This document shows positions 1,986 through 63,480 of a stretch of DNA of 64,000 bases, in pieces. The position numbers and the translations under genes were made by a program. How positions within the stretch are numbered: position 1 is the stretch's first letter; the number at the start of each line of letters is the position of its first letter. A model generated the notes under the pieces. That model did no database searches and was not told the origin of the DNA. It saw nothing but the letters and a program-made list of their open reading frames with translations. The stretch lies in sequence record PP793740.1; one strand, 5' to 3'.

Positions 1986-3509
1986 CACTATCTTCATACA
2001 GCATCGTCAGCGACATGTCTAAAAATCATCTGGGTCATTTTCATATTTAAAAATGAACCCATTAATTGGTCGACGGTCTTTCTTTTTGAGTTTGCTAGTT
2101 ACTACTTTCTTTGATAATCCAAGATCGAGATATGCCTGCTTGGCTGATTTGTATTTCAAAATCTCGCCAGTTTCCACATTTTTCACAAGTGTGGTCTTAT
2201 TTTTAGCCTGACTATACTCAATGGATTCATCCCAGGTTGGCCATTCTGAACCAACCCGACGTACAATGTACCTATCCATAATGACTGGATAAATTGCATG
2301 TCCGCTAACTTTCAAAGAAATCGTACCTACACTAACCCCTATCGCCTCACTTGCTTTCTTTTGCGAGTCATATTTCCTGATTTCACCCGTAACGATATCC
2401 TTTATCTCAATACCGTCGTGCTCAAGAACAATTCCGTCCGTGTTAATTCCGCGATTTTTCAACATTCTCATGATCGCGGTATTCTTTGCTGATCCAATAT
2501 AACCGGTTTTGATTGCATTTCCATGCAACACATTTTCACTCTGGGTTACCCATTCTAGGTTATCGGGTACTGTATTGTCACGATCACCATCTATGTGGTT
2601 GACCACTTTCTCATTGATGGTGTTATCGTATTCAATAAATGTCAGTGCAGCTACACGGTGTAAATTCGTTCCTACATAGGTGCCATCATCTCGACGCAAT
2701 CCAAGATCTCTGTATCCAGTTGTCGCCAAACTTGTTAATTTAGCTGAACCTTCAAAAAGACTTATGACCTTGAGTTCATCATTGATTGCATAGCAGGTAA
2801 AACTAGGGATGAAATAATATCCTGGGAAGGTGGGAACCTCCAATCCTTCTTCCGGGAATTTCCAAATCAAGTTTCTAGGATGAATATTGTCTTCATCTCC
2901 ATCAGAAAACAATATTTCGCAGCGGCTAACAAACTCTAATGGCGCATGCCAGCCTTTAAAACACACTGCTATCAACTTAGTAACATGAATGGGTAGTCTA
3001 TGCCATGGTAATTCAAGAACGTAATGTCGGTTTATTGGATCTATCAATTTATCCAAAAATCGATCATAGACTAACCCATCCAGAGTCAGTCTATAACGCC
3101 CGAATGTACCGGGAATCACAATTTCTCTCGATTTGGGTATACGACTGTAAATAAACACATATCCTCCATTGGAAGACATGTCGCTGCTGTACCGTCCACT
3201 TAATATCTCCCGACATTAAGTAACTGCTCTAGCTTTCACTAGATGGTGAGACTATATCTTCTTCCCAGAGGGAAGCCTTCTATTTCGGACCACTTGGCCC
3301 TACTCTACTCCCTTGGCTGCTTTCGCAGTGGTTTCGATAGTCGTTGAACGTTCTTCCTATCTCGCCTCACGGCAATACGTAGAAGCTTCGCTGCTGATTG
3401 TCCAATCCTAACACTTTTCAAACCGTTACATTTTAGCTTTCGCTATCTGCTTTGGTAGTTAGGCTCTAAGGAGGTTCCAGCAATTAAGAAGGTTAGGAGA
3501 CCAATTAAA
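1986..3509 (-). mobile_element. Group I self-splicing intron with homing endonuclease
   Basis: P AATTGCTGGAAC (3474-3485), Q AATCAGCAGC (3390-3399), R GTTCAACGACTATCG (3335-3349), S AAGATATAGTCTC (3248-3260). P1 is exon GGAGAU paired with intron GUCUCC, with U.G at the splice site. Terminal G at 1986. Confidence 0.93.
2019..3179 (-). CDS. Intron-encoded HNH homing endonuclease (phiKZ gp56-like)
   Basis: HNH motif VVNHIDGDRDNTVPDNLEWVTQSENVLH; two C-terminal NUMOD1/IENR1-like repeats (KDIVTGEIRKYDSQKKASEAIG; KNVETGEILKYKSAKQAYLDLG). Confidence 0.9.
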   Translation of the reverse strand: MSSNGGYVFIYSRIPKSREIVIPGTFGRYRLTLDGLVYDRFLDKLIDPINRHYVLELPWHRLPIHVTKLIAVCFKGWHAPLEFVSRCEILFSDGDEDNIHPRNLIWKFPEEGLEVPTFPGYYFIPSFTCYAINDELKVISLFEGSAKLTSLATTGYRDLGLRRDDGTYVGTNLHRVAALTFIEYDNTINEKVVNHIDGDRDNTVPDNLEWVTQSENVLHGNAIKTGYIGSAKNTAIMRMLKNRGINTDGIVLEHDGIEIKDIVTGEIRKYDSQKKASEAIGVSVGTISLKVSGHAIYPVIMDRYIVRRVGSEWPTWDESIEYSQAKNKTTLVKNVETGEILKYKSAKQAYLDLGLSKKVVTSKLKKKDRRPINGFIFKYENDPDDF

Positions 3510-4772
3510 ATCTCCGTCGAAATCTGCGTTTGGAGCCTTAAGGCATAAAACTGACATGCTGATAGAATTATCATTAATGTCATCTTTTACTTTAGTAATA
3601 AAGAACTGCTGCGTAGATCCACGTTGAAGCGTTGGATTTCGGTGAAAAGTACAACCCATCCCTTTATAAGGGGCTGCTTCTGCAATTAGCTCTTTAAATA
3701 GATCTGCAATGATTTGGTTATATTGAAGTACATTCTCATATACAAATGAGAATGCTTCACGAGTTGTCATGTTAAACTTTGCTTTTAGTTTATTGGTTAG
3801 ATGATACTTTAATAATTGACAACCTACCCCCCAAGGGATATGTAGTTCATCATAATCATGCGGGTCACTAATAGAAGTGATTACTGCACGTGCCGTAGCG
3901 TTGAGACGAGCACCAAACATGTGACGCCGAGCAAGACCAGGCTTTTGAGCAATTCGTGATTTTGCGTAGATCTCGTAGAACTGGCCATATAGTCTTAGTC
4001 CTCGCATAGTCCTATTCTGAGCTTTAATTGGACTAAGTGGTACAGATGATGCATCAATACTAGCGAAGGTTAAGGTAGCATCAATTGCTGCTTCAATTGG
4101 TTTATCTAAGTAAGTACCAGATGTGGTTGATTCTGCTACGAAACAGAGTTTAGAAGGAACTGGTAAATATTTAGGGAATAACTTATCTTTATTCTGAGCA
4201 ACGAATTGAGCGAATTCGGATTTATTATTAGAGATAATATTTGCATCTAGTAGGAATTGGAAGATCTCATTGAAATTATCAATGAAGTGATTTAATCCTC
4301 TTTCAAATCCTCGATGCAGTAGCCTATCTACTTTCCTGCGTGTTTCCTTAGAACCAATAGATTCTACATCGTATCGATAAGAAGTATCAGTTAGATATGC
4401 TAAGAAATCGAATTCTTTAGTTACTAGATATCCGGTTAGCATAATGATTAAACGTGGGTTAATTAGGCTACGTACATGTTTTGGTGTACGAACCCACATT
4501 GATGGTTCGATAGGGCGGCTAGAAGTATTGACAACTGGAGTATTACAAATATCACAGATTACTCCGAGTTTATGTGCGTCTTCGATTGCTCGACAATCAC
4601 AGCTTACACTACTTTCAATTGCTTCTGAATCTTGGAAATGAGAATAGAAATGTCTATCAAATTCTTCTTTCTCATCTGAGTTACTCGTATTGTAATCATT
4701 GGCATAAATTCGTTTACCCGTAAATTGATCATGTACTTCATCATGATCAACAACTTTGGCATAAAGACCCAT
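3510..4772 (-). CDS. Non-virion RNA polymerase beta'-like subunit, exon 1 (phiKZ gp55)
   Basis: Zn-binding CDC...CDIC, RLNATARAVIT, RNPTL and catalytic NADFDGD at the exon end; spliced product about 487 aa. Confidence 0.93.
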
Positions 4773-5166: not shown

Positions 5167-7047
5167 TTAGTACCAGGTACCCGGTGCATTATAGGAAGGA
5201 GCGCCGTAGGTTTGACCCATGCTGCCAGCCATACCAACTTGTGCACTACCAGAAACAGCCATGTTACCCATACCGGTGTAACCAGCGAAGCGCTGTTGAC
5301 CGAAGTTGGTAATTAGGTTTTCCATGGTTACAGTTACACCAGCTGCTGCTGCTGCGGCATCCATTGCGGTGATGAATTTCGGGTTAAAGGTTAGACGACG
5401 AGCACGACCAGTATAGGTAACGTTACCTAGGTACATCTTGTCGAAGCCTTTACTGTTATTCATACGACGCACAATGTGGTCATTACCTACTTGAGTAGCA
5501 TACCAGGTCTTCCACTCTTGATCGTTACCTTCAGACATGTTCATGGCACCTAGAACGTCAAGATCACGACGGTCACTTAGTTCGCCATGCTCATCAGTGT
5601 AGTGACCGAGGTCTACTTCATGATGGTTGTCAAAGATGATCGGACCAGCTTCAGCTAGGTTATAGAACTGACGGAAATCAGTGCCATATAGGTTAGTTAG
5701 AGCTTGGAAGATCAGGCTAACTGCACGAGCTTGGTTTACGCCACCAGCTGCATCTAGGACTACTTGCTCAAGAGCAGAGTTGTCACCCATCGGATCGATA
5801 TCGATCTGGAATGCAGGGTTCTGGTTAACCATCTTGTTCATTAGCATTACGAAGTTGCTGTCGTCTGCCATGAATGCTTCGGTGCGAGTTTCAATCGCTT
5901 TACCTAGCTCTGAGTAATAACCAAGTGCACCAATATCACGCATCTTGCTGGTAGCGATCTTCGGCATTAGGGTACGAGCCCATGCCTGGGATGCAGTTGC
6001 ACGATACGCATTACCAAGTGCGAACAGCCACATTTCTAGAGTCCATGCTTGGATCCAGGAAGCCTTACGAACGTCAGTGATAACGATGTAAGGAGTGAAC
6101 TGCGGAGGTAGAACTGCACCAGGTAGAGTTACGCCGAACATACCTTGTTGCTGGCCAGTGGTCGGAGTCCAATGTAGGTCTACGAATAGACTAACTTGGT
6201 TTAGCTGGCTATCGGTATCATAGAACTCGTTCTCAGGTACGTTGGTTTTCTTACCACGGCTAGTGGAGATAACCAGGTCAGAACGAATCGGATTACCGCA
6301 GCTATCTTTAACCGGAATACCATTGTAGTCTAGGTTGCAGGTAAGCTGTTCGTTTTCTGCTTTGATGTGGGTCGCAATAGAGAACGGAGTCTCATTGTTA
6401 CGACGTGCGATAGCATCTTCACAGATATTAACAGATTCAACTAGTAGGTTCTTAACAGCTAGTTCATCTTTGAAGTCGAAGTCAGCATACACTGCACGGG
6501 GACCGGCAGATAGTACTTCTAGACCAGGGATGTTGTAACGGTTCCGTAGGAATTCGCCGATCTTGCTCCAGTATTGAGCAGTGAATACATCACGCGGTAG
6601 TACCTTCTCTTCAATGATGTCGTCAGTTAGACCATTGTTGATCTTGTGGGTACGGGGACGGATGCGAGTACCAGGTAGGTTATCGAGTACTAGAGTACGA
6701 ACGAATGCCTTCATGGAACCATTGATATCTTTAGCTAGTTTAACAATTAGTAGACCAGCCATACCAACTTGTTGCGCATCGCGATCGAAACGATGGATAT
6801 CGAAATCATCAGGTAGGTCCTGATGGCGGATTGCTTCTTCTTTTACTTTAGTGAATACTTGTAGGGCATCTGCTGAACGAGCATCAGAACCATCTAGCCG
6901 CCCAGAGCGACGCATTAGATGGTTAATGCCAGTAGTAGACCCAGGCGCGCCAGTAGGACGTTGAGCTTGACGCTGTGCAGTGGGTTGCGGAGCAGGAGCA
7001 GTAGCTTGAGTTTGAACGGTGCCGATTTCGTTTTCGTTAACAGCCAT
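5167..7047 (-). CDS. chmA: Chimallin, major phage-nucleus shell protein (phiKZ gp54)
   Basis: 626 aa with flexible Q/A/P-rich N-terminus and G/M-rich C-terminal tail; lies immediately upstream of the nvRNAP gp55 gene; early promoter; strongly biased codon usage; resembles recalled gp54. Confidence 0.9.
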
Positions 7048-7140: not shown

Positions 7141-7358
7141 TTTCATTACAACATAGACGCTATAATCTGCTATCAGCAGATCGTAACGAACACTATGTTC
7201 ACTACATATTATTACAATCTGAGTATTATTTATTTTTCATTTTACAATTTCCATATCTTCTTTTTTGAGTTTATGGGTATAAAGTTTGAATCCAGAAACT
7301 AATTTACGTCAGTCCTGTATTAAATAATAACTATCAGTATTTTTATAAAATGCAGTTA

Positions 7359-57789: not shown

Positions 57790-59673
57790 ATGAATAAAAT
57801 GCTAAACTTCCTAAACCGTACGCTATATAGCGGTACTGAAAAAGTATCTTCAAAAGCTACACCAAGTCTAGAACACTTTAAAACAAATGTTGAACAAGTA
57901 GATAAAAAGATTCTACAACCCTTTAGTACTAAATTTAAAACCATTCTAAAAGAATGTTACAGTAATGAAGAGTGGGTTGAAGAACAATCATTTATTGAAG
58001 AACCTATTGATCTTGGTTCAGCTGCACGCGGTCTTACCGAGCGCGGTATTATGCGTGGTGATTGGGGACGCTTAGCGCATTCCACTATTAAAGAAGCAGA
58101 AGGTATGATGCGTACTTATAGTGGTCGTCTAAATGAAGATATGGAGGCATCTGAAATTAATGAAGTAATTCAAGATATGCCTTATAACTTCACAGCTGGC
58201 TCAGCTAATACTAGCCGTTTAGAAGAAGATGACTCTATTTTTGTTGAAGCAGATACAACTGTAGTTGAACCTCTGTCTAAGCAGACTCTGCCAAAAGTAG
58301 CAGAGCTTACTAATCAATTAGTGGAAGTCTATAACCGAATTACTGAAGAATTTACAGAAACTGGTATTGCTAAAGTTGAACAAGTTGAACAGCCAGCAGT
58401 TCTTGTAGCACTTGGTGAGATCATTAGTAGTTTTAATAAACTAATTGATGCTTCATGTGGTGCTCTACCAGTGGAAGAAACTGTTATTGTAGAGGAGGAT
58501 CCGTTACCTGCCATTGTTACTGGTCCAACTACTGAACCCATTGATGGTGAAATTCCACCTGTTGATGCTATTAATAATTCTGCGGCATTAGAAGAGTTTA
58601 TTGAAGAAGTACTAAGTACTAATCCAGAATTCATTAAATACCAAAGTATGAATGATAGTAATATTGATTCATATCTAACTGGAGATGACTGGATTATACT
58701 AAAATTTAAAGATGGTTCTTATTATTTATACAATGCCCAGAGTGCTGGTGAAACAAATATAGAAATCATGAAAGATATGGCCGAAACTGGTAGTGGTCTT
58801 AATGGTTTTATAAATCGAGTTATTCGTGGCGGGTATGTAGAGAAGTCCATCATTAATACTCCCGGTTTTATACAAGTCTCAAATGAAGGTCTTATCGACA
58901 CCATTAAGAGTATCTTCGACTCTGGCCCTGAGATCAATCTTGATAAAAAGAAGAAAGCTATTGCTACACTGAAAAGTACCTATGGTGATGCCAAATGGGT
59001 GGCAGAAGCAAAGCTTAAAACCGGCGAAGTAAAAGTATCGAGTTACGAGACGTTCGCGTCTAATGATCCTAAGACCGCAAAAGCCAATATCACTAATGCT
59101 GTAGCTAAAGCTGATCGTCACAACCAGAAAGTTCTGGATGAGAACAGTAAGATACTAGCCCCCGTGGTTAATCTGTTCAAAGGGAATGATTGGCAAGACC
59201 CTAAGAAAGTCGCTACTCTTCTGGCTGAATGGAAACCCAATGTAAAGACAAACTTCCAAGAACCAAAATGGCCAGATAATGCTGGTGCTAAGATTAAGTT
59301 GCTTGATGCTACCGGTATTGTGGAAGCAGCTAACGTTATCATTGACGTTCTGTCTAACAACACTAAGACTATTGCGGACACTTGGGTAGCCCAGTATCCT
59401 GACCTATCTGTCAATGGGGATATCTACAAACATAAGCTATCCACTATTAAAGATAAAGATGCTCTTGAGGATGTATATCTGCTGGCTAAAAGGGCCGATA
59501 ATGCCATTCTTAACATTCATGCATCGTACGACGACGCTAAGGTTGAATCTACATATCGAGTATTTGCTATCGACATGTTGAAACTAATGCAAGCATCTGT
59601 CAGTAGCTTCCCAAGTGGTTCAACCGTAGAGAACACCAATGAACGCAATACGGTCATTGGTATTGAAGAATAA
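57790..59673 (+). CDS. Internal head protein with acidic propeptide (gp303 position)
   Basis: 627 aa; S/A-x-E motifs (SLE, ALE268, SNE366-G) typical of phiKZ head-protease substrates. Confidence 0.7.
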   Translation: MNKMLNFLNRTLYSGTEKVSSKATPSLEHFKTNVEQVDKKILQPFSTKFKTILKECYSNEEWVEEQSFIEEPIDLGSAARGLTERGIMRGDWGRLAHSTIKEAEGMMRTYSGRLNEDMEASEINEVIQDMPYNFTAGSANTSRLEEDDSIFVEADTTVVEPLSKQTLPKVAELTNQLVEVYNRITEEFTETGIAKVEQVEQPAVLVALGEIISSFNKLIDASCGALPVEETVIVEEDPLPAIVTGPTTEPIDGEIPPVDAINNSAALEEFIEEVLSTNPEFIKYQSMNDSNIDSYLTGDDWIILKFKDGSYYLYNAQSAGETNIEIMKDMAETGSGLNGFINRVIRGGYVEKSIINTPGFIQVSNEGLIDTIKSIFDSGPEINLDKKKKAIATLKSTYGDAKWVAEAKLKTGEVKVSSYETFASNDPKTAKANITNAVAKADRHNQKVLDENSKILAPVVNLFKGNDWQDPKKVATLLAEWKPNVKTNFQEPKWPDNAGAKIKLLDATGIVEAANVIIDVLSNNTKTIADTWVAQYPDLSVNGDIYKHKLSTIKDKDALEDVYLLAKRADNAILNIHASYDDAKVESTYRVFAIDMLKLMQASVSSFPSGSTVENTNERNTVIGIEE

Positions 59674-59685
59674 CTTACTGAGTAT

Positions 59686-59836
59686 GTAATGATATGTAGA
59701 AATGATCCCTCCCCCTCGTTTCTACATTAGTCATAATAAATCGGAGCCAGTCCCCCTTCCAACTGGCTCCCAGAGAGTAAAACTCTTTGCTGGGCATTAA
59801 TGACGATATATCGCCTCCCTTCGGGGAGGCTTTATA
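59686..59836 (+). ncRNA. Candidate small structured RNA
   Basis: TATG promoter-like motif shared with the tRNA-Asp leader, three stems, C/U-rich loops, UUCG terminator; no ORF noticed. Confidence 0.4.
59813..59830 (+). terminator. Terminator
   Basis: GCCTCCC-TTCG-GGGAGGC-TTT. Confidence 0.85.
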
Positions 59837-59893
59837 TTTTGTTTTTACGTATGTATATTAAAATATGTATAAACAACATAGAGTAATTATAAA

Positions 59894-60346
59894 ATGATCA
59901 AAAATGAACTTTTACCAGGGCTAATCTATGCCCAAAAAGAATTTGATAAAATTGCAGCTAATGTAAAAGACTATGATAAGTATAAAAGACGCGAAGCTGG
60001 TAGGGCAAGTGCCGTTTTAAGAAGTCTAGTGAGCAATATTGTAAATCAGAATAAACCATCCTCACTTGAACATGAAGGCAAAGTTAGTACTACTAATACT
60101 AATGAATATTTAGAAGAAGTTAATAATTACTTCTTTAACATTAATAATATTAAATTAATTTCTCCTAAACTCATAAAAGAGAAATTAACAATTGATCTAA
60201 TGAATATTTATGTTAAATGGAATATGATTGGAGTGGCTGGCCGAAATGATGTTCCAATTATTGAACACAGAATTAATGATTGGTGCGAAGTGACCGATGT
60301 CTACATTAATGGTAATAAGATAACTTCTTTACAATGGCCACGTTGA
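59894..60346 (+). CDS. Hypothetical protein
   Basis: 150-aa ORF. Confidence 0.65.
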   Translation: MIKNELLPGLIYAQKEFDKIAANVKDYDKYKRREAGRASAVLRSLVSNIVNQNKPSSLEHEGKVSTTNTNEYLEEVNNYFFNINNIKLISPKLIKEKLTIDLMNIYVKWNMIGVAGRNDVPIIEHRINDWCEVTDVYINGNKITSLQWPR

Positions 60347-60404
60347 ATTTAAAATAAGTTGTAATAAAATACCTAGCATTACATGTTATGTATTGAAGCA
60401 CAAT

Positions 60405-61893: not shown

Positions 61894-61945
61894 TAAAATA
61901 TTACTGGTTATGTAATACTATGTAGGAAGACATGTCCATACGTTT

Positions 61946-62022
61946 GCGCTCATAGTTCAGTTGGTTAGAATACCCGCCTGTCACGCGGGTGGTCAGGGGT
62001 TCGAGTCCCCTTGGGCGCGCCA
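61946..62022 (+). tRNA. tRNA-Asp (GUC)
   Basis: CCCGC-CT GTC AC-GCGGG, G73 discriminator, CCA. Confidence 0.95.
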
Positions 62023-63196: not shown

Positions 63197-63480
63197 AATA
63201 ATAATATTTATAACTATTTAGATAATTATACTGGCACGATGATATTATGTAAGAGTACTATAATAAAGTATTCTTAAATCTATCCACTAAACACACTCGG
63301 TGGTAGAACTTATTATAGAGTGTGTCTAAATGCCAGGGGTTTGCCACCCCTGGTTATATTCATTGTTACTATTATAAATTCATTTATAGATGAGAAAAGG
63401 TTTTATCACCTTTTCAAAATCGGCATTTAATTCCAGTTAAAAAACTGAATCTATGCTACATTGTAATAAAGGAGTCTATT

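Follow-up and report, generated by a model that had tools for sequence, protein, structure and literature searches.

An abundant non-coding RNA with predicted anti-Shine-Dalgarno-like loops, shared among jumbo phages of Pseudomonas aeruginosa

Between the homologs of PHIKZ303 and PHIKZ302, a phiKZ-like jumbo phage encodes a discrete, abundant, non-coding RNA of about 141 nucleotides, which has its own promoter and its own terminator. Comparison of syntenic sequences indicates that this RNA (hereafter the sRNA) belongs to a structured RNA family common to three phage genera. The transcript itself was already published in 2024; what is described here for the first time is its predicted fold, the family across genera, the promoter class and the conservation of motifs resembling the anti-Shine-Dalgarno (anti-SD) sequence. 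As a tentative explanation, preferred here with less than even confidence, we propose a trans-acting sRNA whose anti-SD-like loops would pair with purine-rich ribosome-binding sites; that it acts in trans, what kind of target it has and in which direction it regulates are all inferred.

Genomic context

The window, that is, the whole 64,000-nucleotide stretch of record PP793740.1 that was analysed, derives on sequence grounds from a phiKZ-like Pseudomonas aeruginosa jumbo phage. Over about 1 kb around the sRNA, identity to numerous Phikzvirus genomes is 97–100%, reaching 100% for vB_PaeM_kmuB and several more. The sRNA gene (59696 to ~59836, or up to 59840; ~141–145 nt; + strand) is the homolog of the phiKZ TU237 transcript ending at T131. 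Its 5' neighbour is the gene of a 627-aa virion protein, the PHIKZ303 homolog (57790-59673), and its 3' neighbour is a 150-aa ORF, the PHIKZ302 homolog (59894-60346). All three lie on the + strand, and alignment to NC_004629 together with its annotation revealed the same order in phiKZ. The sRNA also heads a cluster of tRNA genes (tRNA-Leu, Pro, Met, Asp and Asn).

The sRNA stretch of the window is 97.2% identical to phiKZ 274152-273995(-), and downstream of the sRNA the two genomes are 100% identical. The PHIKZ303 homolog shares 98% identity with phiKZ over its first 1 kb and only ~62% in its 3' half (window 58790-59695), and the four sRNA differences from phiKZ adjoin this mosaic boundary in gp303. 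Judged by these identities, a mosaic or recombination boundary lies at the sRNA promoter and the first hairpin (SL1). Because the downstream sequence is 100% identical and the differences sit beside the mosaic boundary, conservation of the sRNA within the genus is uninformative. At the other end of the window, a group I catalytic intron was recognized at 3227-3531 (-) (Rfam RF00028, 74.8 bits).

Transcript length and abundance

The available text of Putzeys et al. (2024; microLife, PMC10914365) describes a 141-nt phiKZ RNA upstream of PHIKZ302 (TU237/T131), whose length and abundance were confirmed by northern blot, with a read-through form also seen. That text interprets the RNA as arising by conditional premature termination within a 5'UTR and suggests a regulatory role but assigns no function. 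The preliminary description of this locus, which knew of no earlier account of such an RNA, has to be corrected on this point. The discrete transcript that it predicted does exist, as evidenced by the northern blot in the available text of the same paper and by the read depth. The distance from G59696 to ~59836 is 141 nt, in agreement with the published phiKZ length. In public RNA runs from phiKZ-infected cells (nanopore cDNA), contig depth, which is a rough measure, was ~1050 over 59666-59887 versus 15.5 over PHIKZ302, and this nanopore run may be the Putzeys 2024 data set and is thus possibly not independent. Past the sRNA terminator the read depth drops ~70-fold. A literature search found no later paper assigning a function to the 141-nt phiKZ RNA.

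Predicted fold

The sRNA is predicted to fold with an MFE of -56.2 kcal/mol (z = -7.6 versus shuffles) into a 10-bp 5' hairpin, a closed domain holding a 9-bp and an 8-bp hairpin, and a UUCG terminator. The 5'-terminal hairpin, SL1 (59696..59725, +), pairs GUAGAAAUGA with UCGUUUCUAC (59696-59705 with 59716-59725), the expected first transcribed nucleotide being the G of TATG (59696). It corresponds to the ATGTAGA/TCTACAT stem that had been noticed beforehand, which is real but takes this register in the RNA. A branched central domain (59730..59804, +) is closed by GUCAU/AUGAC (59730-59734 with 59800-59804), a helix of the phiKZ type which is present in both the MFE and the centroid structures and is a prediction only. 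Enclosed in this domain are SL2 (59743..59770, +), a 9-bp hairpin of GGAGCCAGU and ACUGGCUCC (59743-59751 with 59762-59770), and SL3 (59771..59789, +), a short hairpin CAGAGAGU-AAA-ACUCUUUG (59771-59778 with 59782-59789). The SL2 stem is as first proposed, and it covaries. Of the third stem, the existence was right and the register was not: it is formed by CAGAGAGU/ACUCUUUG, and the suggested CCCAG/CTGGG overlaps the second stem and is not conserved.

Both loops singled out from the sequence are C/U-rich and predicted to be unpaired: UCCCUCCCCC of SL1 (59706-59715, +) with a probability of 0.84, and CCCCCUUCCA of SL2 (59752-59761, +) with 0.91. Apart from these two, no 10-nt pyrimidine stretch on the + strand of the window has 7 or more C, and their counterparts are the only such C-rich 10-mers on the whole corresponding strand of phiKZ. 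The unit is closed, as had been claimed, by the UUCG terminator, ~141 nt from G59696. The terminator scan placed its core, GCCUCCC-UUCG-GGGAGGC, at 59813-59830, and the complete intrinsic terminator with AU-rich extension and U-tract at 59805..59846 (+), corresponding to T131 in the available text of Putzeys et al. (2024).

Conservation and covariation across genera

Homologs were located by synteny (nrdA, nrdB, gp304-like, gp303-like, sRNA, tRNA cluster) in PhiPA3 (Miltoncavirus), in PS119XW and HPP-Temi, both filed under Pawinskivirus, and in phiLBG22, phiHQ, PA1C and BRkr. The flanking gp303 proteins of the three genera share just 27–40% identity, and the gene next downstream varies among lineages, being PHIKZ302, tRNA-Leu or PhiPA3 gp374. 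The covariation set comprised nine distinct sequences from ~5 lineages. In a MAFFT alignment read against the MFE structure of the window, 95.6% of the cells pair, versus at most 50% when the partners are slid by 1–3 columns. The check by covariation that the preliminary description had proposed came out in favour of the structure, with five pairs showing compensatory changes over SL1 (alignment columns 6/26 and 9/22), SL2 (56/69 and 57/68) and SL3 (80/92, which is AU, GC or UA depending on the phage). In SL2 all cells pair. RNAalifold independently gives the same four helices, and an analogous closing helix in the PS119XW/phiHQ group adds two more compensatory pairs.

The loops are conserved as well. 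CCCUUCCA in the SL2 loop is invariant in 9/9 distinct sequences, and CUCC is kept in the SL1 loop of every member, the rest of that loop varying in sequence among genera. With no more than CUCC shared among the SL1 loops, SL2 alone has a clear single conserved seed. In the PS119XW group, all 24 of the 24 variable columns fall in stems, in junctions, in the terminator loop and flank, or in the last column; no change is seen in the hairpin loops or in a C/U-rich linker of 54 nt. The loop motifs of the relatives are CACUCCU, CCCUUCCA and CCCCUCCUUUC. The PS119XW-group RNAs carry additional single-stranded CCCCUCCUUUC and UCUUUCUCCUU, and the PhiPA3 RNA has one linker motif only, UUCUCCUU, which is half paired in the predicted fold. 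Across members, the predicted probability of being unpaired is 0.82–1.0 for the SL1 and SL2 loops, with 0.91–1.0 for SL2 taken alone, and ~0.6 for the PS119XW-group linker motifs. Each molecule would thereby expose two similar motifs in the phiKZ type and three to four in the PhiPA3 and PS119XW types.

A search with a covariance model built on the family yielded no match in 201phi2-1, Phabio, Viktualia or Psa21, nor did it detect another copy of the sRNA within the window. A scan of IMG/VR with the promoter motif returned mostly chance matches, and a scan of IMG/VR and metagenomes with the SL2 pattern returned PhiPA3 and PA7 records only, together with a single fortuitous match to a GC-rich gene from a metagenome. 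As far as seen in these sequences, the family appears confined to P. aeruginosa jumbo phages. Separately, a BLAST match in PhiPA3 at 113 kb was rejected, as it is a terminator look-alike only.

Promoter

The sequence TTACTGAGTATGTAATGATATGTAG (59675-59699) equals TTACTGGTTATGTAATACTATGTAG (61901-61925) at 21 of 25 positions, and a degenerate 25-nt pattern has exactly two matches in the 64-kb window, where 0.01 would be expected. The idea that the sRNA shares a promoter motif with another RNA gene, tRNA-Asp, is supported. The twin motif (61901-61925, +; TATG at 61919-61922) lies 24 nt upstream of tRNA-Asp (61946-62022) and has its phiKZ counterpart at 271920(-). By motif resemblance, the putative sRNA promoter (59670..59696, +) would be used by the phage non-virion RNA polymerase (nvRNAP). 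It contains ATAACTTACT at 59670-59679, whose TTAC (59675-59678) occupies -21 to -18, and TATG at 59693-59696, with G59696 as the inferred +1. In phiKZ the counterpart of ATAACTTACT at the same place is AAAACTACC, and TTAC-N4-TATGTAATGNTATGTAGA is kept upstream of the sRNA in all relatives.

In phiKZ, late promoters consist of TATG with G as +1, and middle promoters carry AAanTTACc ~24 nt upstream, some of them with TATG too (Yakunina 2015). The sRNA promoter combines an AAanTTACc-like element roughly 20–25 nt before the start, a spacing that is approximate, with TATG and a G at +1 as in the late class, an element that some middle promoters also carry. Because some middle promoters have TATG as well, TATG alone does not mean late. 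Judged by sequence, the 25-nt motif resembles nvRNAP promoters of the middle class more than purely late ones. A third, diverged copy, ATACTCAGATTGTAATAATATGTAG (7202-7226, -; three mismatches), is situated 156 nt upstream of ORF 5167-7047 (-), the nuclear-shell protein gene (PHIKZ054 homolog), and for PHIKZ054 a secondary TSS with a middle motif was reported (Wicke 2021). The label "late" given in the preliminary description is therefore not retained, in view of the middle-class TTAC element ~20 nt before the TATG start and of the copy upstream of PHIKZ054 with its middle-type TSS. A further copy occurs in phiKZ at 269753 (-), ~100 nt upstream of the tRNA PHIKZ_t02. The distribution of the motif suggests a small putative regulon of middle-class promoters serving tRNAs, the sRNA and the shell gene. 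As a side observation, AAAATACCT is followed 13 nt later by TATG (60387-60390) in window 60366-60390 (+), 15 nt upstream of tRNA-Leu, and may represent another middle-type start, for the tRNA-Leu/Pro pair.

Target predictions

The proposed complementarity of the loops to ribosome-binding sites was borne out in pairing predictions, more so for SL1. Pairing of the SL1 loop to the 22 nt before predicted phage starts beats intragenic windows by -2.4 to -2.6 kcal/mol, and the same margin is -2.4 kcal/mol for the 16S anti-SD and -1.8 kcal/mol for the SL2 loop; as the start calls used SD motifs, the contrast with intragenic windows is partly built in, and only the comparison between probes is fair. 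By that comparison, SL1 is about as selective for ribosome-binding regions as the 16S anti-SD, and SL2 is less so. Typical phage SDs pair weakly with the sRNA loops (mean ~-5.5 kcal/mol). Within the phage genomes, the sites most complementary to the loops are 3' arms of the phages' own terminators, which are G-rich and held in hairpins. One set of arms, CCCUCCCC-UUCG-GGGGAGGG-CUUUAU, recurs in many intrinsic terminators of phiKZ (+ strand, e.g. 3744, 120612, 152948, 221812, 237251, 263276), so that the sRNA loops amount to terminator 5'-arm sequence, complementary to the 3' arms.

Predictions in phiKZ and PhiPA3 gave no convincing specific target among phage mRNAs and no general correlation of predicted targets between orthologs of the two phages. 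PHIKZ238.1/PhiPA3 gp279, the only ortholog pair scoring in both (permutation p ~0.03, uncorrected), was set aside, the site being the G-rich arm of a hairpin and the score probably an artefact. These two small orthologs are each preceded by a hairpin with a 5' arm resembling an sRNA loop (CCCUACUCC and CCCCACUCC) and a G-rich 3' arm; such a hairpin may terminate transcription of the gene before it or may act in translation.

As a proxy for the host, the 6.4-Mb genome of P. paraeruginosa ATCC 9027 was used. There, TGGAAGGG-N1-12-ATG occurs 33 times versus 12 for the reversed control. The 11-mer TGGAAGGGGGA, complementary to the phiKZ-type SL2 loop, has just two occurrences, both as SD: one for bacA/uppP (Pfam BacA, E = 2e-86) and one for the gene of a 43-aa membrane peptide. 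The bacA site was not found in 12 related genomes with up to 2 mismatches, and it matches just 8 nt of the PhiPA3-type loop. By their sequence, uppP/bacA and the 43-aa peptide gene can be regarded as weak leads for host targets. Near the 6S RNA gene of ATCC 9027, a 43-aa hydrophobic ORF is preceded by the hairpin TTGCC-TGGAAGGGGGA-GGCAA, whose loop has full complementarity to the SL2 loop of the phiKZ type and could be a loop-loop partner.

Proposed mechanism and alternative explanations

A trans-acting, base-pairing sRNA is favoured because of its own promoter, the hairpin at +1, the strong terminator, the covarying stems and the conserved, exposed pyrimidine motifs. In the proposed sequence of events, nvRNAP would start at G59696 of TATG, at a promoter of middle-class type, and most transcripts would end at the UUCG terminator ~141 nt on, giving an abundant and tightly folded RNA. 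The fold would display the C/U-rich loops UCCCUCCCCC and CCCCCUUCCA, to which the PhiPA3 and PS119XW relatives would add one or two single-stranded CCUCCUU/UCUCCUU motifs. These motifs would act as seeds for pairing in trans with purine-rich, SD-type mRNA sequences in host mRNAs, phage mRNAs or both. Such pairing would keep ribosomes from binding, a mode of action known from C-rich-loop sRNAs in other bacteria.

The alternative with the most weight behind it, which we consider unlikely though deserving of attention, is a cis-acting leader or attenuator, in which the terminator sets transcription into PHIKZ302 and the tRNA genes and the short RNA is a by-product with no role in trans. This would fit the classification in the available text of Putzeys et al. 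(2024; PMC10914365), namely premature termination in a 5'UTR with short and read-through modes, as well as the constant position of the sRNA at the head of a tRNA-containing cluster; moreover, seventeen such short RNAs were reported in phiKZ, suggesting a general transcriptional habit. However, the gene that would be controlled is not conserved, and PHIKZ302 has TATG motifs of its own past the terminator (59850-59853 and 59864-59867). Selection, moreover, keeps loops and covarying stems that are far from the terminator. The features of a riboswitch or attenuator are likewise missing, since the downstream gene varies and inspection of the aligned homologs showed no conserved pairing that competes with the terminator; the match between loop and terminator 3' arm is 7 bp in the window and 4–5 bp in PhiPA3-type RNAs.

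A role as decoy for a protein or ribosome factor appears rather improbable. Here the CCUCC/CUCCUU-type motifs would mimic the 16S 3' end or a C-rich protein site and, instead of pairing with mRNAs, titrate an RNA-binding protein, a nuclease or a factor on the ribosome, of host or phage origin, which is in keeping with the several similar exposed motifs per molecule, the abundance of the RNA and the outcome of the predictions, which yielded no convincing mRNA target. The invariant linker of the PS119XW group also contains CCUCCUU, which equals the core of the 16S 3' tail. Against this, there is no known candidate for a binding protein, GGA or A-rich motifs and not C-rich ones serve in the well-known sponge RNAs of Pseudomonas, and the motif varies between loops and genera more than is usual for a protein site. 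A more speculative proposal, to which we give a low probability, is that of an abundant mimic of the 16S anti-SD tail, with two to four CCUCC/CUCCUU-type motifs per molecule, biasing translation globally. Such a mimic would mask strong host SDs so that phage messages win ribosomes, or would decoy a factor acting on the 16S 3' end. If true, nucleus-forming jumbo phages would possess an RNA-based component of host take-over.

It is very unlikely that the RNA is a stable but functionless fragment that accumulates only through the protection from decay given by its 5' hairpin and terminator: the hairpin does start at +1 and the 3' terminator is strong, yet synteny, compensated structure and invariant unpaired segments are kept over three genera whose gp303 proteins are only 27–40% identical. 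That the locus encodes a small protein is essentially excluded, for although a 32-aa ORF (59702-59800, +) and a 40-aa ORF (59675-59797, -) overlap the sRNA and hypothetical proteins are annotated in 6B, ANB1 and HPP-Temi, the phiKZ sRNA region has no ORF of at least 20 aa because the window's ATG reads ATA there, the reading frames and their lengths differ between lineages with no SD, and the substitutions track base pairing and not codons. The hypothetical-protein CDSs over the sRNA in these three GenBank records (that of 6B on the - strand) lack conservation even among members of the genus and probably do not represent real genes.

Significance

To our knowledge, a function has been established for very few of the non-coding RNAs encoded by strictly lytic phages. 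The sRNA is abundant, apparently made by the phage polymerase, and covaries across three genera of P. aeruginosa jumbo phages that are therapeutic candidates, with motifs complementary to ribosome-binding sites. Should it prove to regulate translation, phiKZ-like phages would have an additional, RNA-based means of favouring their own protein synthesis, and the two loops of the sRNA offer a defined, mutable element. The finding also means that spurious "hypothetical protein" annotations can be taken out of several deposited genomes.

Comparison with known systems

The closest relative is phiKZ TU237/T131, which is the same RNA at the same locus, with 97.2% identity, an equal length from TATG to terminator, and an abundant short form accompanied by read-through. 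The fold, the C-rich loops, the promoter class and the PhiPA3- and PS119XW-type homologs do not appear in the available text of Putzeys et al. (2024; PMC10914365). Other non-coding RNAs of phiKZ include 3'UTR_PHIKZ298 and 5'UTR_gp40 (Gerovac 2021), and a gp182-leader sRNA that is conserved among jumbo phages (PMC11512511). Like the sRNA, these three are short, abundant and structured, running from a TATG-type start to an intrinsic terminator, and one of them shares with the sRNA family its conservation across genera; all are at different loci. Identity of the sRNA with the Grad-seq RNA 3'UTR_PHIKZ298 was rejected, as that RNA maps to window ~63248-63360. Its homolog in the window (63245-63360, +) lacks C/U-rich loops and comes with a TATG of its own (63245-63248) and a CCAGGGG/CCCCTGG terminator. 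An anti-CRISPR repeat mimic, a tRNA-like decoy and ToxI-like repeats were also dropped, there being no repeat or tRNA-like architecture in the sRNA.

The cuckoo/alpha-r14 RNAs (NfeR1, CcsR/RSs0680; RF02344) are alphaproteobacterial sRNAs with two to four hairpins, conserved anti-SD loops and variable stems, and they are proposed to act by occluding ribosome-binding sites. The phage sRNA shares with them the modular hairpins in which stems vary by compensatory changes while a C/U-rich, anti-SD-like motif stays. In contrast, their defining loop motif CCUCCUCCC is absent from the phage sRNA, whose loops are UCCCUCCCCC and CCCCCUUCCA; furthermore, the latter is phage-encoded, is assigned to a phage RNA polymerase, has a branched and not purely tandem fold, and is found in a gammaproteobacterial host. 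Membership in RF02344 (ar14) was rejected, with 19.9 bits against a gathering score of 58.8 (E = 0.14) and no match for the phiHQ homolog, and no Rfam family reaches threshold for the sRNA. The sRNA is thus an analog, and not a homolog, of cuckoo/alpha-r14.

In Gram-positive bacteria, C-rich-loop sRNAs of the RsaE/RoxS type pair with G-rich SD regions through exposed C-rich motifs in more than one loop. The exposed C-rich motifs of the phage sRNA are alike; its sequence, fold and phylogeny are unrelated, and its targets are putative. With its own promoter, a Rho-independent terminator, no coding function and a conserved accessible seed, the sRNA has the anatomy of a base-pairing sRNA, and by architecture it can be placed as a phage-encoded addition to the known class of C-rich-loop sRNAs.
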